Positions 2,013-55,339 of a DNA stretch of 64,000 nucleotides are shown in pieces (the stretch's first letter is position 1; each line of letters begins with the position of its first letter). The stretch lies in the NCBI GenBank assembly GCA_002189035.1, contig NEEC01000013.1, forward strand, positions 186,001 through 250,000, given 5' to 3'. Origin of the DNA: Utricularia gibba. Its lineage: Eukaryota; Plantae; Magnoliophyta. The notes beneath the pieces are model-generated. The model searched no databases. It was not told the DNA's origin and saw nothing but the letters and a program-made list of their open reading frames with translations. The translations under genes were made by a program, and so were the position numbers.

Positions 2013-3421
2013 TGATAACACACAAATTTTCATGTTTTAGTATATGAAAAATCATAAATTTTTAATTATATTTAACTGTTTATTTTATATTTTTAAGTGT
2101 TTTTATTAATTTAAGAGAATGTAATTTTTGGAGTGATTAGTGGGCTAAATCAAGATTTAGCCCCCTCCCCTATATCTAACTCGATTTTGGAGTTTAGCAG
2201 CAACCCAAGAATTAAGAAAAAATCTGAATTTTGTGCAAGTCACCAGGGTGCAAGGGGTAATGAATAGGCTGTCACGGCGGTAGTTTGCAAGTCAGGGCCT
2301 GAAGAAAAAGATCTGTCAAAGAATGTACTTGACTTGGGCATTGGGAGGCGAGAGAAAAGATGAGGAGAGAGAGTCACAATAAGGGAGTTCACCCCAAAAT
2401 TTTCAGAGAGCACACCCGAGGGGTTTCTCCCCCAACCCAACTCGAACACGAAGGATACGAAAAAAGGAGGAAGGAAAGGAATTTTTCTGGAGAAGAACCT
2501 CCAGCTTGAAGGAAGAAGATCAAGACTCAGTTCAGCGCTACTGTTCCGGTCTAGGAACAGTAATAAACGGAAACCAGACTGTTTACTGCTTTATTTTAGC
2601 TTGTTGATGTTTTTAGTTTCTGCACCAAACTTCTGCACGATGTTCTCTATATATTCGTTGTTTTATGTTAATGCCATCACTTTTTACTTTCAAAGCATGA
2701 GTAACTAAACCCTAAGAGTGCCTTAAGGTGAAGCATGGTGGTGTGGGTCTAAGAGTCTTAATAAAATCGATCATTATTTCTTAACTCTTGTTTCTATCAA
2801 ACCATGGGTAGACCTAAGGAGGGGAACAAGTAGCTTCATAGGTTAGATACTTGATTTAGAGGTAGACCAATAAATCAAGACGGGAGCAGTAGGTGTAAGT
2901 CTGGGGTAGAACCAATAGAATCGGGTAGACCTAGTTCTATATGCTTTGCATGCGGGTAGACCTAATTGCAATGTGGGTTATGACATTGAGGACTAGCTTA
3001 AGCCAAAAATATGATGAATGGCCTAGGTAGACTTAGGTTATTTGAAGTTGTGAGTATAGGAACATGGTAGATTACATTAGGAATTTTGGCACCACACCAC
3101 GTGTAGATCCTTAAGGCACGTTAATTTTATTCTGAGTTAGAACCAGTACCTATTACCTTAGCGTTAAGACCTGATATTGTTTACTGATCCTGTTTTCCGA
3201 ACTTGTTTACCACTGTTGATCCGAGCTTAGACTAAGATTTCCTGTTATCCCGAATTATGCATTTACTAAAACACTTGACAAGCACCATCTCCTTGTGATC
3301 GACCCCGACATCCACTATAGAAGTTTTCTAAATTTGTATTTTGTGTAGACTAGGGCTTATAAATTTATTTGATACGGATTTCTATTTTTATTGCAACGAT
3401 ATTAGGAATTTCTGTTTATCA
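2013..3421 (+). mobile_element. Solo LTR (family A copy 1; Ty3/gypsy, Athila-like TGATA...TATCA termini) with 5-bp TSD
   Basis: Starts TGATAACAC, ends TTTATCA. CTTTT on both sides (2008-2012, 3422-3426). Clearly similar to 36600-37663 and 49717-51086. Confidence 0.9.
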
Positions 3422-36599: not shown

Positions 36600-37663
36600 C
36601 TTTAGTGGAGCTGAATGGACTGACTTTGGAAAATGAAAAAAAAAATGTGAAGATTATTTTGAAGAGGGGAGAAGGAAAAGAACACGACCAAACCCCAGGA
36701 GGGGGAAGGAGAACATGAAAGAATGATGATGAAGTCGATTTCTCCAGAAGGAAGATCAAAGACTTGAAAAACAACATCAAAGACCCAATTCAGCGCTACT
36801 GTTGCAGGTAGTGAACAGTAGTAGATCGTGAACAAAACACTCAACTTTATCTTTAGTATGTTGGATATTTCGTTACTTTGACTATTGTTTTACAATGTCT
36901 TTGCTATTTTATTTAATTTATCTTAATGATATCATGCTTCATCTTTCATATATGAGTAGCTAAAACCTAAGAGATGCCTTAAGGTAAAGCATGGTGGTGT
37001 GGATCTAGGGTTAATAATGAAATTTATGTTTGTTTCTTAGTTCTTGTTTCTATTATTCCACGGGTAGACCTAATGAGGAGAACAAGTAACTTCGTAACTA
37101 AGATGTTTGATTTAGAGGTAAACCAACAAATGAAGGCGGGAGCAGTAGGTATTAGCCTAGGGTAGAACCAATAGAAATGCGTAGACCTAGTTCTATATAC
37201 TTTGCATGCGGGTAGACCTAATTGCAATGTTGGTGATGATATTTGGGATTAACTTAGCCGAAAATATGATAAATGACCTGGGTAGACTTAGGTTGTTTGA
37301 AGTTGTGAGTATAGGAACATGGTAAATTAAATTAGGCATTTTAGCACCACACCATTTGCAGAGCTTTAAGGCATCTTCGCATTAGTCTGTGTTAAAACTA
37401 GTATCTGCTATCTTCAGCGTTGAAACTTGATCTTGTTTACTGAACTTGTTTACCATTGTTAGTGTGAGCTTAGACTAAGACCACTATTATTCAGAATTAT
37501 GTATGTGCTGAACTACATGGCAAGCACAAGTTCTTCGTGATCGACCCCGAAATCCACAATAAAATTTTTCTAAATTTGTATTTTGTGTAGACTAGGGCTT
37601 ATAAATTTTTTTGATAATGAAACTTCTATTTTTGCAACGACAATAGGAAATTTTTGTTTATCA
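36600..37663 (+). mobile_element. Family A LTR (copy 3), 5'-truncated, inside the Athila leader/gag start
   Basis: Collinear with 2500-3421 (TTCAGCGCTACTGTT, GGTAGACC motifs); ends TTTATCA at 37663. Left end approximate. Confidence 0.85.
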
Positions 37664-39094
37664 AAAAAATAGCAAAACGGAAACAAAAGAAAAACAAGAA
37701 GAAAGAAAGAAAAAGAAAAGAAAAGGAAAAACTATACGCAACACTAAACAAAAAAATAAACAACTCTCTAGCAACGTCGCCAAAAATTTATTGCATGTCG
37801 TTTCCTCAACAAATTTTAATTTATAAAAACGTAAAAAACAAAGGAGTGTACGTAGTATAAGTGTCGATCTCATGGAGTTAAGTTTTGCGAAATGTGTTGT
37901 GTAGAAAACTTTTACAAATTGTCACGGGTTTGTAAAAGAGGGTTTTTGAAATATAGATATTAAAGTTACAATGCAAGTGATGGACCTTGACTAAGGGTTG
38001 CAGTTCCTAGAAAACGAACTCTGTTTTCTCTTTTTGTCTATCCTTGCCTTGGCTCTCATTGATTCCTTCTGAATAGCTGATTATAGGAGCAAGGAATAGC
38101 CTACTCCCCCTCACACTCTGATTGACAAGGAGGCACAGAAACAGCCTCATGTGATTCCCCCTTGGACTATTGAGAAAACAAGAGTATTGTTGTCGATTGC
38201 CTTCAAAATCGAATTATGCGCGTGTGCCCTGCTATTGCCAATAACTAGTGACAGGTACGAGGTCATTACCTGTCCACTGTTGCGGTACCTTGGCCACAAA
38301 CAATTCGCTACTTTTCTTGAACGGATAGGGTTGGAGTTGGTGCTCTTCACCTTACTTTTCATCAAAATCTGCGAGGAGTGGTCTGCTACTCATGAACCAT
38401 GACTAGGAGTCGTTATAGAAAGATTGCAACAAAACGCATGAAGGTATGTAAAATCCGGAATGAATTCAGTGAAGAACCGAGTTTAATGCTCAAGACTTGG
38501 AAGGAAACTTCATCTACTTCCAGAAACCAAAAAGTTTTAGTTACAAAAGGGCATGAAAACAGAAAACAAAATAGAAAGCTAAGGTTCATCTACCTTAGAG
38601 TAGAGGAAGAACCAAAAGTTCTTGGTGCGAAAAGTAAAATGTCAAAAGTCGAAAAGTTCCAAAATAAGTGTTCCAAGTTGGTTTTTTCTCACTCCCCACA
38701 TGCATTAACTACTTCTGGTCCCCTTCTCTTCATTCTTTCTATCTTGCATGCATCACCAGCTTTCCCACACATGCAAATAAGCGCCTAATCATTACTGTAG
38801 ACTCTGACATGTCGTAAGTCAGAGGCCTTGACTAGTATCATTCTTTCGCCCACAATTGTTTCAAGTCATGTACAAAGCACGAAAAGTCAGAGTCTGGTCT
38901 CTTGCAAGCATCTTGCAACATTCCACACTGCCTCCTGACATATTTCAATCAGAGTGCACGAAAAAGATAAAGAAAATAAGATTTTTCTAAAGAAATAGAA
39001 TATTTATCAATATAAATACTAAATTGAATGACTTACCACTAGATTAATACATAATAATACATAATAAACAACTAGAAAATGACAATTAACAGAA

Positions 39095-39620: not shown

Positions 39621-40068
39621 TTTTATTCCATCCGATAGCTCAGGTTTCTAGCGAGACTATTACCAATTGTCTTCCTTTCAATTTTTTGATTTTTTTCATC
39701 GATAATTTTATCAAATCCTTTTCTAAACAATTCAAAATCTAATTATAACAATAATAAAATGTGGTGTTTTGAAACTTTTTTTATAAATAAAATTTGAATA
39801 TTACTTTCGATATTTGATAAAAAAATGAAATAAATTTTATGACTAAATATTGAAAATATTATAACACTGAATATCTTTATTTACAAAATCTGATTATATA
39901 AAAAACATATTAATAATATATGTTATTCATAATATTATATATGTTACTAAATTCATTTTTTGTTTACATTAACATTAAACATATTTTTAATTTTGAGAAA
40001 AAGATAAAAATTAATTCATTAAAATATATTTAAATGGAAATTTAAAAATTATGAATAAATTTAATTTT

Positions 40069-41592
40069 GGGGAAAAATACATTTTAATGCTAACGTTTCA
40101 AATATTGCTTATAATTAGATACACACGTTTTTTAAAATAGTTTTGTGGTATAAATGTTTTAGTTTTTATTCAAATTCAATACAAACGTTTCAAAATATAT
40201 TATTTTGGTATAAACTTTAAATATTATATTATTTTTAAAATATCCACGTTTTTTTAAAAAAAAATTTAAATACATACGTTGTTTAAAAAAGTTAAAAAAA
40301 CAATACAAACGTTTTTTTATACATTCTTTTTGATACATACGTTTATTGTAAACTATGATTTTAAACAAAATATATTAAAAATAATTAATATATTATAATA
40401 TATATTAAAAATTAATAAAAAACTAAAATTTATGTGTCTTTCAAATTGTCATATTTTCTAACTCATTAATTTTCGATTCAAATAAATTTTTTAATTAAAC
40501 CTTTATGTAGAATAAAATATGTATTTAGCGTAACTCTTAATTTAATTTACTTCATTATGTGAATTTGATCATTATATTATATTCATATTTATAAGTTTTT
40601 CAAAATTTACAACAATATCCGAAAACTTTTTCTAATAATTAAAAAATATCTAAATAATATATTAATATTATAAGTAATATAATTGTAAATATCTATTCCA
40701 ACATTTAATAATTTGAGTCCATCATAATAAATTTAGTGCATTTTCAGTTGATTAATCATTTTTTTATAAAATGATACATGACATTAATTAAATATTCCTA
40801 TTGATTTGGATAGAATGAAAACTAAATATTAGATAATTAAACATTTTTTGGAATCATTGAAATGTTTAAATATCATCTTATCCATCAAAGTAAACTAAAC
40901 GATAAGCATGCCAATCAAAAGAAACAACGATATAGCTATTGAACTAACCAGTTCATCCCCTCATGCTATACGTATTTGATTTCAGGGGAATCGCCGACGT
41001 CGACCCATCATCACATTTGGCAATGCACATGTTGGAACCAACTGTAATACATCATAACTCGTATACCAACTTCTTGTAAGCTACAAAATGACCAAAGTTA
41101 GTAATATTCCACCTATTATATTTAACAACTTTGAATGGTTAGAGGCTTACAAATGATGGATACTTAGAAGGAAAGAAAACTGATGATGCATTCTGCATGA
41201 GGAGCCTCACCGAATATAAAGCATATAACTCACATTCAATTGATTCAGTTTGTAGTAGAACCTATAAAAAGAATAACTTTAAAAATCAATTTGCTATAAG
41301 TGTTTGTACTATGTTATTTATTGAGGTTGTATTATGTGTACCTCAGGAAAGCAAATAGGTATAGAATCCAACTTATTAATATCGAAAGAAGGTGCCGCAT
41401 ACCCTAGCATGTATTTCAGACACCTATACAAGTAAAGTAGTGACTTAGTCATAGCTAATTTATTCATTAATGTAGTATAATAATTTCTAGTACCTATACA
41501 AATCTTATTCCACTGGACATAATGCATCTCCCGCACCCAAAAAATCTAACACAAGGATCATTCTATTGCAAGTATCTCCAAAGTTACAGCAT
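40069..41592 (-). mobile_element. MULE X': partial inverted copy of the terminal 1.5 kb of MULE X
   Basis: Starts GGGGAAAAATAC and aligns to the reverse complement of 47805-49264, including Ulp1 3' exons. About 5 differences in a 190-bp test block; more diverged in the TIR. Confidence 0.85.
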
Positions 41593-42307
41593 ATGTGATC
41601 CAAAATATTTAAAAAATGATATATTTGACGTGTAAAAAATTTGTTGCATGACATATTTGACCCATAAAAAATTTAGTTTTGATACTTTTGATCCATAAAA
41701 TATTATAATGGGGCATATTTGACCCAACGAAAAGTTATAAAAGTTTACAACAGAGTCCGTTTAACTCAATAAGTTTACTGTTGGTCCTATGCTTAGTGTT
41801 CAGTTGGTATATTCAACCCAATAATTTGGCATATTTGGCCCTTACAGTTCAATAAATTGACATTGTTGACCCTTAAGGTTCGTTAAATCCGCATATTTAA
41901 CCCATAAAGTGTGACAAAGTAACATAATTAATCCAATAAGTTTATCGAATTGGAATAAATAACCTATAAAGTTTTTCAAAATTTTAAACAAATTGAATAC
42001 TTTTTGAAATAAATATTGATCAATAAGTGCTCTATAAACATGGGCACAACAGTCAATCTAAATATCCATCGTGTCAACCCACTATGATTCGAACCCGTGA
42101 TGTCATTGCAAAGTGAACTTAAGATTATTATCAGCATTTTTATAAATTAAATTTATTTTAAACATGCGATAACATGACAGATGCAAGAATTACAAAAAAA
42201 ATATTTTTATAAACATATGATATATGTTTATTAAAATATAAATAATGTAAATATGCTATTTATTAAAACATATAATAAATATGAAAGTTTTTTAGTTTTT
42301 AATTTTC

Positions 42308-42646
42308 TTAGCATTCGATCCTTAGTTATACTTTGGATGGAGTGTGTATTTTTATTTTAATCATTTTAATTAGCATTCGATCCTTGATTATGATTCGAAT
42401 CTAGTGCATATTTTTTATTTTAATATTTTTATTAGCATTTAACCCTTAGGTATGATTTGGATCGAGCGTGTATTTATTATTGTAATATTTTTGTTAGCGT
42501 TCAATCCTTAGATATGATTCGGATCGAGCGTGTATTTATTATTATAATATTTTTATTAGCATTCAATCCTTAAATATGATTTGGATCGAGCATGTATTTA
42601 TTATTGTAATATTTTTATTAATATTCGATCCTTAGATATGATTCGG
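42308..42646. repeat. 62-bp tandem array, 5.5 copies
   Basis: Unit starts at 42308, 42370, 42432, 42494, 42556, 42618; core TTAGCATTCGATCCTTAGATATGATTCGGATCGAGCGTGTATT. Confidence 0.92.
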
Positions 42647-43456
42647 AGACAAGGTACCGATGATATCTCTCATCCTTACTTGACTTATGTTCACATGGGA
42701 TGGAAGCTCTGGGTCAAGGGATGGCCAAGGCAAGCAAGGGAAACCATGGAGGACAAAAGGCCACTCAAGGGGCCTTCGGGCAAACAGGGGCTGAAAAGCC
42801 AACCAAGGGAGAACCTTAGGGTTCAATCAAGGGGCATTGACCATAGAGGATCAAGGGAGGCTCTTAGGACTGCACAGAGTGCTACACGGATCACAGATTT
42901 CTCTTCTTACTTGTCATTGTGCATAGGATTATGTATTGTACCGTTCTAAACCCTTACTGGTCGTGTAGGTACCCATGGGAACAAGTCAGTAGACGGGCTA
43001 GGAGAGGCGGATGGCGAGGGTGGAGCGGCCGAGCATTGAAGTCATGGGCAAACAAGGGGTGGATTAGAGCGCAACATCGAACTCTCTTTACTTTCCTGTT
43101 TTCCTGCTCCTCTTCTTTCTTACTTGGACTAATACTTGCTAGTAATGAATAAAGGTCGGTTTTTGGTGCTACAACCTCTATGCCCAGGACCTCGCGCACA
43201 ACATGGCAAACAAGAAAGCGCACGCGGGCAAGGTGGTACCAGGCGCGTGCGTGCAGGACTTACGGCACGGGAAGCCCGCACGAGTGAAGTGTGCTGCTCA
43301 GTCTCGCTACCAGCTCGCACGCGGTAACGGCCACTTGACTAGGGTGTCTTGGCAGATCGTTACATGTGGCTGGTGCATGAGCATACGTGCATGGTTTCCC
43401 GTGTGGCCTTGTCGTGCTGCTGGGTGTGCATACGGGCATGGTTTACGCATAAATAA

Positions 43457-43760
43457 TGCACTCGATCCTCATGTTTTCTAAGGATTGAGTGCATCATTTT
43501 ATAATAAAAAATGCACTCTATCTTTAGAAATGTTAAGGTTCGAGTGCATTATTTTTATCAAAAATAAATAATGCACTTGGTCCTTATGTTTTCTAAGAAT
43601 CGAGTGCATCATTTTATATTAAAAATGCATTATATCTTTAGAAGTGATAAGGATCGAGTGCATTATTTTTATTAAAAATAAAAAATGCACTCGGTCCTTA
43701 TGTTTTCTAAAGATCAAGTGCATCATTTTATAATAAAAAATGCACTCCATCTTTAGAAAC
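43457..43760. repeat. Hairpin array: about 115-bp dimer of two 55/60-bp palindromic subunits, 5.5 subunits
   Basis: Subunits start at 43457, 43512, 43572, 43626, 43686, 43741; TGCACTCGATCC-N13-GGATCGAGTGCA consensus. Confidence 0.92.
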
Positions 43761-44058
43761 CACAACCCATGCCTGTATGCGATCCTCCACATGCGTAACC
43801 CACGCTCGTATGCCACCCTCTATGCCTGTGTGTTGCCCTTCTATATACTTGTGTTTATTTTTTTATTAGATATAACTAGAATGATTGTAATAAGTATTCA
43901 AATAAAGTAATCTTCAAAAAATACAGAAATCATAAGCATATTATGATTGCTCGTATGATGTTTGTTTAAAAATTTTAAAGAAACAAATATAATGCATAAA
44001 TAGTGTCAAAGACAAATAAAGAAGTCTACAATCTCATACCAACAAACAAGTTCAATGT

Positions 44059-45149
44059 CTACATTTTTTTGGAAGGTTTGCTTACCCAACCGCTCCTAGA
44101 TCGACGAGGAATCTCCATCAATTCTGCAAATTCACGAATATCTTCTTCAACAAACCAATCCTGTACCATCTATAGAAACATAATAGTACTTAGTACCTAC
44201 TAATAAAATAAACAATAAATTTTGAAAATTACTTACAAACAAAGGGTGTGTTTCAATAGTGTAAAGGTTGGGTGCTTGTTGGAGGAAAAGATACACATAG
44301 TATAATACATAAATCCCGCACTCAGTTGCACCCTTTTGTTTAGGGACCTATATGTTGATCAACGTTAAAATAAGGAAATAAATAATATTAACAACTTCAT
44401 ACTAACCTCTGGCCAAAAAATAGGCAACTGAAACTCCTTCACACAATCATCATCCCAACCATTCACTTTAAAACTAGAGTCCACTAATCTATAGATCATG
44501 CATAACAAAAATATTAATAGAGATTAAGAATAAAACACAATATAGCACAAGGTATTCAAACACACTACTTACTTTCGAAGGCTACTTGTTATATGAGTCG
44601 ACATGCTATGCATCGAATCCAAGACAAGGATACACCGTTGGTATTTCTCTCTAAGATTGCACAATATGGCAAGGGTGTAGTGACCACTACAAGATATAGA
44701 GACAATTCAAAGTAACACATATTCTAATGGCAAATGAGGAATATATATATATAAAAGCTTACTTCATGTTAATTGGCAAGAAGATGTAACGAGTGTTGCA
44801 TGGATTGTGCCTAACACACCACTTTTCAATCATTTCTAAGTCAAACTTTTTCTCCACGGCATGTTGCATCCATAGGTTGTGGATGAATGCAACATTCATT
44901 AGACAACCCGGTGGCTGCAATGCCACAATTTTCCTACAAATAAAAACAATGATCATGAACAAAATTCCAAAAAAATAGAATGTGTATTATATTGGATTCA
45001 TATCTATTGACTTACTCAATGATGTCATCTAGTGCATCATCCATCAACTCGCCATACAACCGTAGATGGGGAGCCTTACACCTTTGTTTATTTCTCGGAA
45101 CCGGTTGAAACTCAGAAGCATCCGAGTTGCTACTGACTTCCACCCGCAT
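44059..45149 (-). CDS. Ulp1/C48 SUMO-protease domain of MULE Y; exons 45149-45016, 44933-44763, 44686-44573, 44488-44407, 44347-44237, 44169-44059 (240 aa from the first Met)
   Basis: Phase-consistent GT-AG introns with no stops. YIFLPINMN-GHYTLAILCN, CILVLDSM, VPKQKGATECGIYVL, QAP, DWF give His/Asp/Cys plus the oxyanion Gln. Confidence 0.8.
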
Positions 45150-46154
45150 ATTCACGCAACCATTGAAGATGACTCATTTGTTGTTCATTTGACCATGTGG
45201 CATGTTGTACACCACACTTGTTGGGACCGTCTTCATAGATATTTCTTGATGCGGTTTAGTATTTCCTTTCTTCACTTCCACAGGGCTTTGGTGAGAAGTC
45301 TCACCAACTTCCTTATTGCCCATCGAACTACAATAATCAGCAATATCCATGTTGGCCGTACATGGTTCCAGTGGTATGAGTGTTTCATCCTCCTCCATTT
45401 GTTGAGCCCTATCCTCATTTAAGTCACCCTTTTTGCAATATTTTTTTCTTGTGGCCTTTTTTGTCACATGTAGAACATGATATCAGCCTACAAGTTACAT
45501 TCAATCGACTATAAATCCAAAATCAATCCATACAAAAAAGAGTGTGATGGACAAAACCTGGAGGATCTGCGCTTTTGTGAATTAGATGGACGGCCAGGTT
45601 TCCTACGCTTCTACTCAGGTGAAAGTAGCGGTAAGTCGGCCATACAAGGCCATTCTTCAGCTCCTGGAAGCTTGAACAAGTCACCATCATACATTTTTTG
45701 ATAGGCCATATGTGTATATCTATAGTCTGTGTATTTGACCAAAGTATCACCCTCCAAAATACAGCCGCATGTTTGTAAGGTATACCTAAACAAACAATAA
45801 ATAAAAATACAAAACACATAATAGAATACAAAATATTCATATTAAAAAATACAACAAATATAATATGAATTCTTCTAATAAAACTACCAATATAATACAA
45901 AATATTCATACTAAAAAATACAACAAATATAATATGAATTCTTCTAATTAAAGTACCAAATATACTAAAAAATACTAAACATATGCCATCAATTCTTATA
46001 ATAAGCCTAATGAAATATCCATACTAAAAAATACTACACATCTAACATCAATTCTTATAATAAACCTAACAATAAAATACAAAATATTCATAATCAAAAA
46101 TACTACACATGTAACATCAATTCTTATAATAAAACAAGAGAAATAAAATAAAAT

Positions 46155-49100
46155 AGGGCTACGTTTTGTTTCAATACAAACGTTTGAAAAAAAACATATA
46201 ATTCTATATTAACGTTTGTATAATGTGATTTTTGATACATACGTTGTCTAATTTTATAGATTTTACATACAAACGTTTTCAAAATTTTTTATTTTGAAAC
46301 TAATGTTTTGAAAAACAATATATCTTCAATACCAATGTTTTTTTGAAATTTTTTTTGATACATATGTTTGTAATTTATCTTTTAAATAAAAACACACCTT
46401 TTAACACCTATATTATGAGAACAAACGTTTACTAATGGGCTTTTATTTCAATACATATATTTAGCTGGCCCATTCCCAAATTGAGAAATGTAATATAATT
46501 AGAGATCAGTTATTGCTAGCCACCATGATGAAATCCTCTGATTTTTGTTAGCCATCCCGATCCATCACAAGCCACTCTGATTGTTGACCCGTCGTCCTTT
46601 TGACCCATCACGATCGTCCTTATTTAGTAGCTCATCGCTCTCTTGACTCTAAGTCGGTGTTCTCAAATTCTGGGTTTTATTGATGGTCATTTTAGATTCA
46701 TCTTCTTATATCATTCTTCTTTGAATCGTAAGTTTATTAGACAGATGTAGAAACGTATCGATTTAATTTGTTATAGCTTTTCAATTGTTTTGGTGCCACA
46801 GGTTCTAACCATGAGTGATTCGGATACTACGGAATCATACATTTATTCGGAGGAGGAGTTTCAATATGAATCTAGTGGGTTGCAACCTTCGTGCTCGTTC
46901 GATATTGAACCGATGTTTAAAATTGAGTGGAAGGAAGAATGCATACTTCAAGCACATGAGGCTGCCACTCAATACATTGAGTTATATGATCATGAGGATA
47001 AAGAAATGATATATTATAACTCGAAAAAAGCATGGAAATGATTAAATCTTAGGTAAATCTTATACTATTTTTTATATTAATAATAGTTAGGGGTTAATTT
47101 CTAATTATTTCTTTGAGTATCAATAATTTTTTCCATCTAATTTCTAGATGTGATTGGTATATGTTATGTTTATAATTATTATAAATTTTACTTATAATGC
47201 GTATGAGTTGGTTCCTATGTGTATTTATCTGGGGTTTCTATTTATTATTCATAAAAGTCTTTTTATTATGATGTAGGGAAGGAATATTATTTGGTAGCAA
47301 AATAGTAGCATGGGATGCCATCGTTGCTTATTGTATTCAGGAATGAATTCAGTGGAAATTTAAGAGAAATAACAACAGATACATCTGTGTTGTGTGTGAA
47401 GGGGGTCGGGACGAAAGTTATAGTTGGGGTGTAACCATCTCAGGTCCCCGTCTAGATCGAGATTGGCAAGTATCTAAGTATCATAGTGAGCACTATAGTT
47501 CATGTGACAGGGAGTTGACTGTAGTTCTTAGTGATTATGATTTTATAGAAGTGTTACGTTATATTAGAAGTGAGATTCCAGAAGAGCGACTGGACATTTT
47601 TAATTTCATTGACCCTCTATATTTCAATGAGTAGATTGGTAATGAGGAGAGAGTTCGTAGAATATTTCCCCATTGACCAGCCTTCCTTACTTGCCCATAC
47701 ATGGTTTGGCCTATTGTTTATCGGTAAGCTACACTTTGCTTTATATTTGAATATTATAGATAATATGTTTAACCTGTTATGTTCTACAACTAGAGATCAT
47801 TGGGTGGTGATGGTATGCTGTAACTTTGGAGATGCTCGCAATAGAATGATCTTGTCTTAGGTTCTTTGGGTGCAGGAGATGCATTATGTCCAGCGGAAGA
47901 AGATTTGTATAGGTACTAGAAATTATTATACTACATTAATGAATAAATTAGCTATGACTAAATCACTACTTTACTTGTGTAGGTGTCTGAAATACATGCT
48001 AGGGTATGCGGCACCTTCTTTCGATGTTAATGAGTTGGATTCTGTGCCTATTCGCTTTCCTTAGGTACACACAATGCAACCTCAATGAATAGCATAGTAC
48101 AAACACATATAGCAAATTGATTTTTAAAGTTATTCTTTTTATAGGTTCCACTACAAACTGGACCAACTGAATGTGGGTTATATGCTTTATATTCGGTGAG
48201 GCTCCTCATGCAAAATGCACCACCAGTTTTCTTTCCTTCTGAGTATCCATCATTTGGAAGCCTCTAACCATTCAAAATTGTTAAATACAATAAGTGGAAT
48301 ACTACTAACTTTGGTCATTTTGTAGCTTACAAGAAGTTGGTATACGAGTTATGATGTATTACAGTTCGCTCCAACATGTGGATTGCCAAATGTGATGATG
48401 GGTGGATGTCAGCGATTCCCCTAAAATCAAATACGTATAGCATGTGGGGATGAACTGGTTAGTTCAATAGCTATATCGTTGTTTCTTTTGATTGGCATGC
48501 TTATCGTTTAGTTTACTTTGATGGATAAGATGATATTTAAGCATTTCAATGATTCCAAAAAAATTTTAATTATCTAATATTTAGTTTTCATTCAATCCAA
48601 ATCAATAGGAATATTTAATTAATGTCATGTATCATTTTATAAAAAAGTGATTAATCAACTTAAAATGCACTAAGTTTATTATGATGGATTCAAATTATTA
48701 AATGTTGGAATAGATATTTACAATTATATTATTTATAATATTAATATATTATTTAGATATTTTTTAATTATTAGAAAAAGTTTTCGGATATTGTTGTAAA
48801 TTTTGAAAAACTTATAAATATGAATATAATATAATAATCAAATTCACATAATGAAGTAAATTAAATTAATAAGTTAGAAAACATGAAAATTTGAAATACA
48901 CATAAATTATATTTTTTTATTAATTTTTAATATATATTATAATAAATTAATTATTTTTAATATATTTTGTTCAAAATCATAATTTACAATAAACGCATGT
49001 ATCAAAAAGTATGTGTGAAAAAACATTTGTATTGCTTTTTAACTTTTTTAAACAACGTATGTATTTAAACAATGTTTTAAAAAACGTTGATATTTGAAAA

Positions 49101-49264
49101 ATAATATAATATTTAACGTTTGTACCAAAATGATATATTTTGAAACGTTTGTATTGAATTTAAATAAAAACTGAAACGTTTGTACCACAAAACTATTTTC
49201 GAAAACATATGCATCTAATTATAAGTAATCTTTGAAACGTTAGCATCAAAACGTATTTTTCCCC
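46155..49264 (+). mobile_element. Non-autonomous MULE X (3.1 kb) inserted in the SWIM-domain intron of Y; carries a MuDR DNA-binding-domain fragment joined to a decayed Ulp1
   Basis: Ends AGGG.TACGTTTTG / CAAAACGTATTTTTCCCC with AAACGTTT subterminal repeats. 9-bp AAATAAAAT on both sides (46146-46154, 49265-49273; AT-rich so weaker evidence). DHWVVMVCCN and VPLQTGPTECG motifs. Confidence 0.75.
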
Positions 49265-49716
49265 AAATAAAATATATACCTGTAATTTCCCATACCCTAC
49301 AATCACAGAAATGGTTGGTCAACCGGACAGTGTATTTTTTTGTTCCCTCCGACCACCCGTAATTACCTCGATCACCAACATCCATATGCCCCTTTCTTCC
49401 ATCTTCCAATGCTTGGCTTAGAATATTCTCAATTCTTAGACATAAATCTCCATGCCATCTTGATGCATCTCGACGACGCTTAACAAACCAATCACAAACC
49501 TTGTCGTTAATCCGTTCCAAAAGCTCGATTAGGTCCAACCTCCTAGCATCCTTGAGAGCTGAATTAAGGGACTCTGAGTTGTTGTTCGACAAAATGGCAC
49601 ACTTGTTGCCTCGATCAAAAAATGCTCGACACCATTGAAATGGTAGGATGCAAAATGGTTTGCATAAACCGTCCATATACTCGTATGCTTTGGGATTACA
49701 TTCCTTAAGTGCAAAA

Positions 49717-51086
49717 TGGTTATATTTATTATGGTTTACGTTAGATAAATGTGATTTTTCATGTTTTAGTGGTGTTTATGTTAATCTCATGTGATTATGT
49801 GAAAAGTAGACTAAATCCTTTGATTTAGTCCACAACTTTTGTTACTAATGTTTCAGTAAGTTCAGCAGGGAAATCACCCAAAAATCAGACTTGCAAGCGT
49901 GTGAAACAAGGGAAAAAGAGTGCAAAATCCGGAGAAGGACAAACAGTGCTGGTGGCCAAGAACAGTACAGGCCATCGCAGTCTGCAAGTTCAGGCCGGGA
50001 ACAGTGCTGGCGGCCAAGAACAGTACTGGCAGTCGGGAACAGTGCAATGGAGTGAAGCAAAAGGGAAAATTATTTCGAAAAGGAAAAAACAGCGAGGCAA
50101 AACACACGCAAGGGGGCTTCTTCCCCAACGGGAAAAACACCAACCAGAGCGGGGAAGGAAGGCCTTCATCCCCAAGAGCACCACCGGAGCCCAGTCCAAC
50201 GCTAGTGTTCCGAGCGGTGAACAGTAGCTAACGGGCAGAAGAACAATCTTTATCTACTTTCCGTTTTCTGAACATTTCAAGTTTCTGCATTTGACTTGTT
50301 TACAATGTTTCTGCCATTTTGGTCAACTTACATGAATGAAATCGTGTTTTATTTCCCAAGCATGAGTGGCTACAGCCTTAGGGATGACTTAAGGTGAAGT
50401 GGTGTGGTGTGTGCTTAGGGTTGATGAATAAATTTATGTGTATTGCTTAACTCTTGTTTCTAACAAACCATGGGTAGACCTAAGGAGGGAAACAAGTGGT
50501 TTTACAACTTAGATGCTTGGTTTAGAGGTAGACCAACAAACCAAGACGGGCGCAGTCGGTGTTAGTCCATGATGGAACCAGTAGAACCGGGTAGATCTAG
50601 TTCTATATGCCTTGCATGCGGGTAGACCTAATTGCAATGTTGGTTATGATATTAGGAATTAGGTTAACCAAAAATATGATGAATGACCTGGATAGACTTA
50701 GGTTATTTGAAGTTGTGAGTATAGGAAGATAGTAAATTAAGTTAGTAACCTTAGCATAACACCACCCGCAGATCCTTAAGACATCCTCGTATTATTCTAA
50801 GTTAGAACCAATACCTGTCACTTTAGCATTGAAACCTGATATTGCCTACTACCTTATTTACTGAACTTGTTTACCACTGTTAGTCCGAGCTTAGATTAAG
50901 ACCTACTGTTATCCGAAATTATGCATGTACTAAAACACTTAACAAGCACCAGCTCTTCGTGATCGACTCCGATATCCACTATACAAGTTTTCTAAATTTG
51001 TATTTTGTGTAGATTAGGGCTTATAAATTTATTTGATAACGAAATTTCTATTTTTGCAAGGACATTAGGAGAATTTCCGTTTATCA
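49717..51086 (+). mobile_element. Family A LTR (copy 4) inside mudrA, no TSD
   Basis: Collinear with 2013-3421 over its 3' two-thirds; ends TTTCCGTTTATCA at 51086. Left end approximate. Confidence 0.85.
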
Positions 51087-51836
51087 ACGCCTAAACTGAC
51101 TAGGCGTTGCAGGAGCTCTATCTGAAACTATGGTAAATGATTCTTGCGTCTCCTCCGAAATACCGTACTCTTCAGCAAGCAATTTCATGAACCAAGTCCA
51201 AGCCATCAAAGTTTCACCACCCACAACACCCCATGCAAGAGGGAAAACGCCATTATTCGGATCCGAGGCCGTCGCCACAAGCACTTTCCCATTCAATTTA
51301 CTCAATGTCTGCGTGCCATCAACTCCAATCACATTATGGCCGCATATACAGAATCAATCTTTACAAGCCTATAAATCAAGCAAATACTAAAAAAAATCAA
51401 ATATTATCACATAATCCATCAACTCGCCATACATAAATGCTAACTTATCATTACATAATTAATAAAATACATCTTTAACATACAATGTTCAACAATAAAC
51501 CAACCAAAAATATGTAAGAAAAAACACTACAAAAATAAAAACAAATCCACAAATATATAAAAAAATGCTTCAAAAATGCATACCTTAGGACAAAAATAAA
51601 CTCCTTCACATATTTTACTTTTCCCATCTTCACCACCATCTACCTCCAATATTGCCACGGTAGCACCTTCATTAGATACCCGATATTGTTCACAATAACT
51701 TTGTAGGTGCTCGAAATCATTCTTCATACTTCCCATCGCCATCTTCCTTGTATTTTCTTTTGCTCTCCTCACCTTGTGAGTAGACACCTCCACATGCCAA
51801 TCACGTTTTATATCCATAAGTAGATCCGCAACCTTT

Positions 51837-53285
51837 TGTTAGTGTATGTGTTCTAGAGACAATCAACTCATTGGCAAATCTTATCTTTTGATATTTAATT
51901 TGAATTGTGATCAAATTTATATCATTGATGAAATCCTCTACTTGATCTATGTGCTATAGAAATTATGATGAGATCATAATGTGAGATTCTTCAAGCAATC
52001 ATGATCAAGTTAAATCTCTCTGGCTAGAGTATTTGTGAAATGAGGATATCATAAATACGGATAAACTGGCACACATTGAGTTCCCTAAACAGTTTAGGCA
52101 ATGGTTCTCACAATTGATGTAATGAGATTACTAGAACCTATGTGTGGGTGTCGATTAGAGAATCGATTCACTGGATGACTCATCTTCGAGATGCTACTAT
52201 GGGAAGCTAACCAAGTGTAAATAGCAAGATCTCGAATATGACAGCCGTGCAAGTAAGCTTAGACTTGAGGTCAACAAAGTTATCTTGATCTTAAGCTCAC
52301 ATTTTCGCTCATTACTAATGGGAGCCTAACCATGGCTTGCCTAGTATGGATGAGTAGGGATGTGACTCCTTAAGGTTGGAGATAGTTGATTGATCAATAA
52401 AGGATTCATCACTCATGTTAGCAATGAGATCATATCTCAAGTAATTGCATCAAAGCCTAACAGTAAGTCCTGGGCCCAGGGTAATGACATTCAAATTCTT
52501 TGAGTAGGTCATTGATTGTTAGTGCTTGAATGCAATTATGAGTTCGATACATCAAAAAGACACACCCATGTTCTGGTACCGAATGAGATATAAGTATGAT
52601 GAAAGCTGTTCATTGCATGGTGGCTGGTCATGGAAATGCTCAATCAATTCACCTGATTATTCTTTAATCTTGGGGATCATGATATGTTGCTAGACATCAC
52701 TCATGATCGATAATGATGGATTTGATTAATTAAGAGTTAATTAATAAATCCATTATTACAGCCTTGATTGAGTAAGCCTATAGGGTTATACACAATAGTG
52801 GAGTCACTCATCGATATAAAATAGAATGACACAATTACATGAGATGTAATTGGTAAAGTGGATAATTTAAATAGAGAATTATTTTGAGATTAATATTGAT
52901 TAAACTCAAAATAAAAGATCTCATATAGATATGATTTGATATGTCACAAAATATATATCAAAAAAAATTTAGATCTTGAGATCTGCTCCAAGGTCTTCGT
53001 GCTCTCTGAGACTAATCCACAAGGAGATGTTTTTCTTTACTAGCACCTGAGGAATTTGACCAGCATTCAAGAGCCTTGAGAAGGTTATCGACGGAGTGCT
53101 CCACGTGTGGATACCATAGAGGCCGTCTGCTATTGGCGGTTGGTGAACAATGGAGTGATCTAAAAGGTATTTCAGAATCCCTTTGTCTAATGTATACCGT
53201 ATTCCAATATCTACGTTGGGGGTTTCTCAAAATTTTTAAAATTCCGCTGCTTTTGAGACATACAATGTCTACGAGAAACCCAACA
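51837..53285. mobile_element. Solo LTR, 1449 bp (copia Angela-like, tentative), TSD CCTTT/CCTTC, inside mudrA
   Basis: TGTTAG...CCAACA. Removal restores the MuDRA frame RPLMK-VADLLMDIKRDW. Confidence 0.8.
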
Positions 53286-55339
53286 CCTTCATCAATGGAC
53301 GATCAATGAGCCTATCCATGTACATCTTCCCAAGCCAACGCGTATTCATTGATTTGTTGTTCACATGTGGCCGACAATGGTCTCTATGTGGAGTAACTTC
53401 ATAAACACTCTAAGTCATCATCGGTGTTACCTTCACATACACCTTCCACGGGCATGTTACCCCTTCACTACCTCTACAACGAGCAATCAAACGACGCTTA
53501 TCATTCTTCTCAAACCAGAATTGGATTCCTTTCCGCACACAATATTCTTCTAGTGCATCTTTGGCCTTAGCTTTCGATTCAAAGATTATTCCTTCCCTAT
53601 AAATAAAACATAATTTAAATACTAAAAATAATAATAATACAACATAATCAAAACAAATTATATTTACACAAGTTCTTGTATTCGAACACTATCGCTTTCC
53701 ATTCTAATAATGTTCAAAGGCCCTTCACTTGTTTCATTTTGAGGAGCTTCCGATTGTATTCCTTCAGACATAGGAATTTCTAAAGCTTGCCCATAATCAT
53801 CATTCTCGATAGGGAATTGGTCATCAAGAATCTCGTAGTCTTTTTCCTCACTTCCATAATCAAATTCGAAGTCACTTTCATACTCCATGTGAGTATCTAT
53901 ATCTACAATTTCCAATTAGGAAATCAACAAAAAAAAAAGTAATGAGTACAATCTACACCTATTATTTTGATGAGACTAACAAGAAGAAAAGCAGAAGTCA
54001 CATGGAAAATCTGGGAAAACATGTATACAAAAAACATACAACTGTCTTGATAGCATAATAGAAAACATCACATAATCTAGTAGAAGAAATAGCACTAATC
54101 CATATAAAATTACATGTAAAGGGCACACATTTAATAACCCCATAGTGTGCAACATATTATGGAAGGACATATTATATATTAATCCACCTTGGTTAAAGGA
54201 TATTTTCCAGTTTTGCTCAAACTTTATCCACTGACCCAGCTGTGCTACCGCCAAGTTAGCATAAAAAACAGGACCCACTGCATAACATGCATGTCCAACT
54301 AGTCATCTGAAGCAAAACAATCTATATAGGCAGTTGTTTATTATCATATTTATCAACTGAAATGTTCAACAATAGCAACCAGGTGAATAAGAAGCAAATG
54401 CAACCAATTTTCCAGTTTTGCTCAACAGAATTGTTCAGCATCACTGATGCCAAGGAAAACCATCATTCACAAACCAACCGATTTTTTGCACAAAAGATCA
54501 ACAATAGCAACCAAGTGAATAAGAAGCAAATGCAATAATGCAAAGATTGGTATTATAAAGAAAAGGGGAATGGCTCCGCACTTATGCTGCTTTCTTGCTT
54601 GCCTCTACATCGGGAAAATTCTTGACGTTTGTTGTTTATTAGGGGCATCCCGAAAACAGAATGAAGCAAAAAAATTCACGAAAGCCATACCTTAAGAGCA
54701 ACTTCATGCCTTACTATTGTGTGGGAATCACTTCTCTCAATCTCTCATTAGTTTGACTTCACCCGTAAGTGGAGAAGAGACTCATCCCCAATTCAATTTA
54801 GGGTCAAATATCAAAAGTAAAATTTTTTAAATATTTTAATAATTAAATATATATTAATAAAATATTATTATTATGGAACCGGGTTCAATTATGTAAGTCA
54901 AATATGCCAAACTGGTAAATTATTTGGGTCAAATATGCCAAAATTTAAATTTTATCAGGTTAAATTTATCATTATTAAAAGTGTGTGTTATACAGTAACA
55001 AAAATCCATAGGTCAAATATGTCAATTTATCAAACTTATGTGTCAAATATGCCCATTCAAGAAACTTTATAGGTTCGTTATGCCCCGTTATGAAAATTTC
55101 TAGATCCGTTATATTCTAAACCCATAATTTTTAGGTCATATATGTAATTATCTCATTGAACATCATCTCTTGTTCTTGCTCTAGCAAAGGAGCATGTCTA
55201 TAGATTCTAGCACCTTTGTTAGCTTGAAATTTGCAGACTAATAATTGAAATAACTTTAACATAAAGTTGCACATTACAATCAAAATGTATTGTGTAATCA
55301 AACTTTAATCAAACCTTTAAATATTCTTTCCACCAAAAA

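Follow-up and report, generated by a model that had tools for sequence, protein, structure and literature searches.

The window analysed here is a stretch of 64,000 nucleotides of Utricularia gibba DNA (contig NEEC01000013.1, positions 186,001 to 250,000 of the forward strand), and all coordinates below are counted from its first letter. Between 44059 and ~53600, on the minus strand, it holds a dead copy of a multi-copy MuDR-type Mutator-like element (MULE) that carries an Ulp1/C48 cysteine-protease domain and into which other repeats have nested. We refer to it as element Y. The transposase and C48 parts of Y form one array that resembles a transcription unit, running from 53598 to 44059, and this arrangement is common to the sister contigs. 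Y thus unites a transposase of the mudrA type with a peptidase C48 domain in one element, which is how a 'C48-MULE' has been defined (PMC4948706).

The sister copies were contigs of three public DNA runs placed on the window at 85% likeness, and the differences given below are the best-supported ones only. Each of the three runs, all from the same organism, placed many contigs on the stretch (425, 123 and 1253, at 85-99% likeness), which makes element Y a multi-copy family. In run X1, C>T and G>A changes made up 47% of the differences between the sister contigs and the window, a share that fits the expectation for methylated repeats. Self-BLAST found no second copy of Y in the window, and nothing was found in two exact-pattern scans of metagenome contigs for its sister copies. 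When the transposase was compared with 1.84 billion representative proteins through its SWIM exon, it proved to be at most 38% identical to any of them: the 153-residue exon gave 927 matches, the best of which were only 37-38% identical. Identity this low to everything in the library points to a lineage-specific family.

MuDRA-like library proteins align collinearly along the minus strand, from the N-terminal region through the CCHC knuckle (tblastn). The features of the locus and the evidence for each are collected in Table 1. The PF10551 profile matched at 51087-51332 with 29.3 bits, above its cut-off of 27.6. The SWIM finger (CxCxnCxH) reached only 16.7 bits against a cut-off of 19.6 because an intron splits it. 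In the exon with the first SWIM half, the MuDRA alignment covers 49709-49275, and further alignments cover 45748-45557 and, over the CCHC knuckle, 45510-45442. That exon ends in ...CDCRVWEIT plus a G at the donor G/GTATAT (49270/49269; a slash within letters marks the splice point). The next one starts at 45785 behind the acceptor tttag and reads G/IPYKHA, the third SWIM cysteine being a Tyr in this copy (GIPYKHA, against GIPC[KR]HA in homologues). After the frame switch that follows, the new frame aligns as far as KPGRP...RRSS, across the TAG at 45613-45611 (homologues P0118, P0143, P0057, P0151 and P0152). Removal of the 70-nt intron then joins RRSSR/LISCSTCDKKGH in frame; left unspliced, this intron contains a stop, and its length is no multiple of 3. 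The best transposase homologue, P0118 (940 residues), ends 13 residues past its knuckle. As ordinary MuDRA homologues end at about this distance, the much longer extension found in Y is an addition.

This extension begins within the knuckle exon itself. A run of seven A at 45447-45441 separates the frame of the CX2CX4H motif (CSTCDKKGH) from the frame that holds the fourth Cys. With 7 A, the knuckle frame reads CSTCDKKGHKKKILQKG and then meets a stop at 45424-45422, 9 codons past the knuckle's His. With 6 A, a Cys codon falls exactly four codons past the His, which completes C-X2-C-X4-H-X4-C, the motif reported at the C-termini of MURA (PMC6305189), and the frame then runs on into an acidic linker. 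The linker frame (...YCKKGDLNEDRAQQMEEDE...) spans 142 codons to the donor GA/GTAAGT and contains a single stop, the TGA, while the other two frames contain 7 and 16. At most one stop was expected with a probability of 0.00045 (20,000 shuffles), and the openness of the linker is beyond chance. Several in-frame ATGs occur in it, the first at 45398 (MEEDETLIP...). The tail of the exon, LRLYGELMDDALDDIIE, resembles the usual start of a C48 domain when its motif is read by eye; searches with this putative C48 start gave no match. Word-index protein searches with the linker open reading frame (ORF) and with the following exon, U2, returned no candidate within a length window that shuts out long fusions. 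The joint between the two exons, GA/GTAAGT at 45016/45015 to ttgtag/G at 44934/44933, is in frame (DDIIE/KIVALQ).

The protease part is interrupted by five introns, all of them GT..AG and 59-84 nt long, with GTAAGT, GTAAGC or GTTAGT as donors, and once spliced it has an open frame of 248 codons, counted from the codon that follows the TGA. The Pfam and PDB scans were made exon by exon. Exon U5 matched PF02902, the only family it matched, with an E value of 0.006 over profile positions 162-187, and its top three PDB matches were SENP7 (E 0.021), SENP7 again and SENP5. It contains the Gln...Cys active-site motif (Q-x-n-D/E-C-G) of Peptidase C48 (Ulp1/SENP). The candidate His and Asp of U3 stand in the expected order ahead of the Cys exon; U3 alone had no significant search match. 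For exon U2, 82 of the 100 nearest clusters were Peptidase_C48 (Atlas features). Searched singly against PDB and Pfam, exons U1, U2, U3, U4 and U6 gave no meaningful match because they are too short. On read-through, three of the five protease donors present an in-frame TAA; the idea that these are a designed switch was rejected, since a phase-2 exon ending in ..A/GTAAG always gives AG-TAA when unspliced.

Table 1. Features of element Y and of the insertions nested in it (window coordinates)
Feature	Position	Strand	Evidence
Candidate 5' subterminal region of Y, weak	54811..55070	.	short inverted matches with 41602-41929 (68-85% over 27-76 nt)
Transposase N-terminal exon remnant	53275..53598	-	tblastn, P0118 residues 349-454, E 5e-14
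Transposase exon remnant upstream of the MULE domain	51596..51835	-	tblastn, P0068 residues 308-386 and P0144 residues 27-93
MULE (DDE) transposase domain exon	51117..51368	-	Pfam PF10551; tblastn, P0118 residues 538-618, 43% identity
Nested long terminal repeat (LTR)-like repeat, 1.36 kb, in the transposase coding region	49725..51087	.	repeats elsewhere in the window; depth jump
Transposase exon ending in the first SWIM half (CDCRVWEITG)	49270..49709	-	Pfam SWIM, partial; tblastn with many MuDRA proteins
Nested MULE X in the SWIM intron of Y	46156..49264	+	10-bp duplication AAATAAAATA on both sides; sister contigs without X
Exon with second SWIM half, frame switch, TAG and GRP motif	45558..45785	-	sequence reading; alignment to homologues
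Intron, 70 nt, GT..AG	45488..45557	-	CCAG/GTTTTG ... TTGTAG/G; AG/G = Arg keeps the frame
Single exon: CCHC knuckle, 7-A run (45447-45441), 142-codon linker, TGA (45176-45174), putative C48 start (YGELMDDALDDIIE)	45016..45487	-	frames, stop counts, sister contigs
C48 exon U2 (KIVALQ...PINM)	44763..44933	-	canonical acceptor and donor
C48 exon U3, candidate catalytic His (GHYTLAIL) and Asp (VLDSMHS)	44573..44686	-	splice sites, frame; motifs by eye
C48 exon U4	44407..44488	-	splice sites, frame
C48 exon U5, oxyanion Gln and catalytic Cys (VPKQKGATECGIYVL)	44237..44347	-	Pfam PF02902, PDB matches
Last protease exon U6 and TAG stop	44059..44169	-	acceptor tatag/ATG; open to the TAG at 44061-44059
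Candidate 3' subterminal region of Y, weak	41602..41929	.	inverted matches with 54811-55070

Recomputation on the minus strand bore out the junctions, the 70-nt intron, the frame joins and all the coordinates of the original prediction, which had been made from the letters of this copy alone. The four lesions that it had listed are also present where it had placed them: a frame switch within 45766-45754, the TAG at 45613-45611, the 7-A run at 45447-45441 and the TGA at 45176-45174. Two of them, the TGA and the extra A, are missing from the sister contigs, wholly or in part. The TGA is missing from all sister contigs in two runs and from about two thirds of them (by depth) in the third. It had been ascribed to C-to-T decay of a CGA codon, an origin that does not hold: the sister contigs have a plus-strand C at 45176, their codon is GGA (Gly), and the TGA is therefore no C-to-T change. 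The 6-A state occurs in 3 of ~9 sister contigs, one in each run, and restores the knuckle's fourth Cys. All sister contigs also have a plus-strand C at 45440, which replaces a Tyr by an Asp just before that Cys. As an observation in its own right, the length of the A run is polymorphic among the copies of the family exactly at the border between the knuckle and the frame of linker and protease.

Next to these states, the sister contigs inform on the layout of the exon. A sister contig is unbroken over 45005-45444 and the depth is continuous there, which makes the exon that joins knuckle, linker and C48 start a feature of the family. In one sister contig other letters replace those from 44935 to 44995, in the intron after the linker exon, as is expected of an intron. 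This copy is heavily rearranged and carries two nested insertions, and it might be supposed from this that an unrelated Ulp1 fragment ended up behind a transposase pseudogene by chance or through an assembly artefact, the match of frames being a coincidence. Such an origin is refuted in practice, since the knuckle and the putative C48 start lie in one uninterrupted exon, many sister contigs of the three independent DNA runs show the same arrangement, and the linker is open far beyond chance.

An in-frame arrangement of transposase and protease probably existed in this lineage-specific MULE family. On balance, we consider it likely that the founder elements had 6 A and a single spliced ORF for a DDE transposase, a SWIM finger, a CCHC knuckle, an acidic linker and a C48 protease. 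We infer that the 6-A state is the ancestral one. In founders of this kind, the knuckle, the linker and the putative C48 start would have shared one exon, and five short introns would have followed before the protease was complete; the family would have had no separate downstream protease gene with an intergenic spacer of its own. Because the 6-A state puts the whole stretch in one frame, the founders most likely made a spliced mRNA, if only as one isoform, that would have encoded transposase, linker and protease as a single protein. The fusion protein would then really have been made by these elements.

Several points weigh against a founder fusion. The original prediction had put transposase and C48 in one frame, and this stands in so far as the two share one exon, and with 6 A one frame, in an arrangement common to the sister copies; it does not stand for the roughly two thirds of sister contigs that retain 7 A, in which the transposase frame stops and the linker-frame ATG then lies at 45398. 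The sister copies yielded no intact copy that could be read end to end. The C48 call consists of one exon-level match under the Pfam gathering score, plus motifs. Transcripts spanning SWIM to Ulp1 had been proposed as a check; no RNA run was listed as containing the stretch, and the one RNA run examined, X10, placed a single contig, on the unrelated repeat at 49725-49800, and nothing on the gene. A motif scan found the C48 motif in none of the 262 MuDRA-like proteins gathered. The fused architecture was likewise absent from the 20 longest matches (Pfam hmmscan) and from 120 relatives of P0118 (precomputed Pfam), Atlas look-ups gave SWIM/MULE or C48 clusters only and none combined, and the searches yielded no close annotated relative that has the fused architecture. 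Among the annotated relatives gathered, the fusion is not common. Published accounts, moreover, present the ULP part of MULEs mostly as a second gene (PMC4948706).

Some of these points can also be read as the mark of two cistrons. The transposase would then end after an incomplete knuckle, at the 7-A stop at 45424-45422, and a ULP-like ORF would start at an ATG in the linker (e.g. 45398), much as in KAONASHI, so that the continuity would be only a matter of frames. It would agree with this that 7 A is commoner than 6 A in the sister contigs, that the linker offers several in-frame ATGs, that in reviews the C48 part of a MULE counts as a second gene (PMC4948706, PMC13317346) and that spanning RNA was not seen. 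We regard two cistrons, the main rival of the fusion, as possible but unlikely. Just 8 codons separate the stop from the first ATG, which leaves no room for a polyadenylation site and a promoter, and the sole AATAAA of the exon, at 45092, lies 330 nt further on. Moreover, only the 6-A frame has the fourth Cys at its canonical spacing, and the linker frame is open back through the knuckle.

A third way to account for the A run is a programmed switch, in which most products would stop after the knuckle as transposase and occasional slippage, in transcription or in translation, would yield the fusion. Bacterial insertion sequence (IS) elements make orfAB fusion transposases through programmed frameshifting, and a 7-A switch could be likened to them. 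The 6-A and 7-A states are both present in the family, and the shift is placed exactly between two functional parts. We nevertheless hold a programmed switch to be very improbable: no neutral mutation is commoner than a change in homopolymer length, the 7-A frame loses the fourth Cys of the knuckle, no RNA speaks for it, and a stimulatory structure downstream was not seen, though no search aimed at one was made. Seven A are also few for RNA polymerase II to slip on to an appreciable extent.

If the founders did encode the fusion that we favour, its deSUMOylase-like protease may have acted where the transposase binds and so aided transposition or countered silencing. A further elaboration, which we think improbable, is that the founders switched between transposase-only and fusion products, either through length variation or slippage at the A run or because the first protease intron, with its in-frame TAA at the donor, was retained, and that the tethered protease cleared chromatin or repair factors of SUMO-like marks at the ends of the element. 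If true, this would be a cis-acting device for anti-silencing or for assisting transposition, something not yet shown for any plant MULE.

Two insertions are nested in this copy. MULE X sits 5 nt inside the SWIM intron, between copies of its duplication at 46146-46155 and 49265-49274. Sister contigs from two DNA runs connect 46145 straight to 49265, so MULE X is private to this copy. Its ends are GGGCTACGTTTTG.../...CAAAACGTATTTTTCCCC, and it has a C48-like exon of its own (VPLQTGPTECGLYALY, at 48058-48255) that is 33% identical to that of Y. Contig depth puts the abundance of MULE X at 2-4 times that of Y, and a partial second copy of X lies 5 kb off in the opposite orientation (40068-41593, minus strand, 90-95% identical). 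Beside its insertion site, the SWIM intron of Y (45762-46203) is filled by five tandem copies of a ~69-bp unit, which are 62-84% identical when aligned as 122-nt blocks.

The LTR-like insertion at ~49725-51087 is a further break in the transposase, upstream of the SWIM exon; it separates homologue residues 618 and 679, and at 49725 the depth jumps and the contigs diverge. At 2682-3421 and 36877-37664 the window holds stretches 79-83% identical to its part 50290-51087, which makes up the 3' 800 bp of the repeat. The repeat ends in ...TTTATCA, and its end at 49725-49800 is very high-copy, with a depth of 1631 in run X5.

MuDR-type MULEs are marked by terminal inverted repeats and a target-site duplication of 9-11 bp. 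In Y, the inverted matches between the two candidate subterminal regions, which have the motif GGGTCAAATATG/CATATTTGACCC in common, are weak, and no target-site duplication was defined. Between the protease stop and the candidate 3' end, the block at 42500-43500 is GC-rich (42-53% GC against 15-35% around it) and contains several ORFs of 60-120 codons that overlap one another; inverted repeats of ~50-140 nt cluster behind it, at 43451-43765. The block may derive from a captured fragment or represent a further insertion.

Finally, we compared Y with the known transposons that carry Ulp1-like proteases. The original prediction had thought the combination of transposase and Ulp1 possibly new, a claim that has to be given up, since C48-MULEs, Ulp1-bearing transposases and rice ULP-MULE fusions are already published. 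MULEs with Ulp1/C48 domains include KAONASHI of Arabidopsis (PMC2528002, PMC6117577) and the ULP-containing MULEs of melon and rice. In several grapevine MULE families the ULP lies downstream of the transposase, in one orientation or the other (PMC2528002), and clades of 'C48-MULEs' extend across the angiosperms (PMC4948706). Y is a new family member within this published class, and the combination itself was already known.

The closest likeness is with the plant C48-MULEs (grapevine, melon CUMULE, rice and eudicot clades), which also pair a MuDR-type transposase (MULE, SWIM, CCHC) with Ulp1/C48 in one element. Like Y, they are described with the ULP downstream in the same orientation, and they too are multi-copy and mostly decayed (PMC2528002, PMC4948706). 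They differ in that the papers mostly speak of an ULP region or a second gene, while Y has the knuckle and the putative C48 start in one exon and one frame. The KAONASHI (KI) MULEs, or KIU genes of Arabidopsis VANDAL, share with Y a MULE-borne peptidase C48 that was amplified with its element (PMC13317346, PMC6117577). Y is not a KI-MULE as these have been defined (PMC2528002): in KI-MULEs the ULP gene is separate, runs in reverse to mudrA and belongs to an element without terminal inverted repeats (PMC2528002), unlike the protease of Y with its same orientation and frame. An anti-silencing role has been discussed for the VANC and KIU proteins (PMC13317346, PMC6117577), and the thought that Y could use its protease as an anti-silencing deSUMOylase, speculative as it is, echoes published ideas on VANC and KIU (PMC13317346).

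Outside the MULEs, Ginger1 encodes a single spliced protein in which a DNA transposase bears Ulp1 (or OTU) at its C terminus; its coding sequence has 0-4 introns (PMC2836005), and 'Mutator TPases' with Ulp1 have been aligned alongside it (PMC2836005). Ginger1, however, has a Gypsy-integrase-like DDE transposase and lives in animals (Hydra, Aplysia, aphid), so that it belongs to another superfamily and another host kingdom. Why DNA transposons of plants and animals repeatedly carry Ulp1-like proteases has yet to be explained, and a family that translated its protease as part of its transposase would offer a clean system for asking whether the protease acts in cis at transposase-bound DNA. Rice ULP gene models are annotated plant proteins that pair a MULE transposase domain with an ULP domain (PMC12903978, 2026); these are Oryza gene predictions with no shown relation to the Y family, likened to it by domain content alone.

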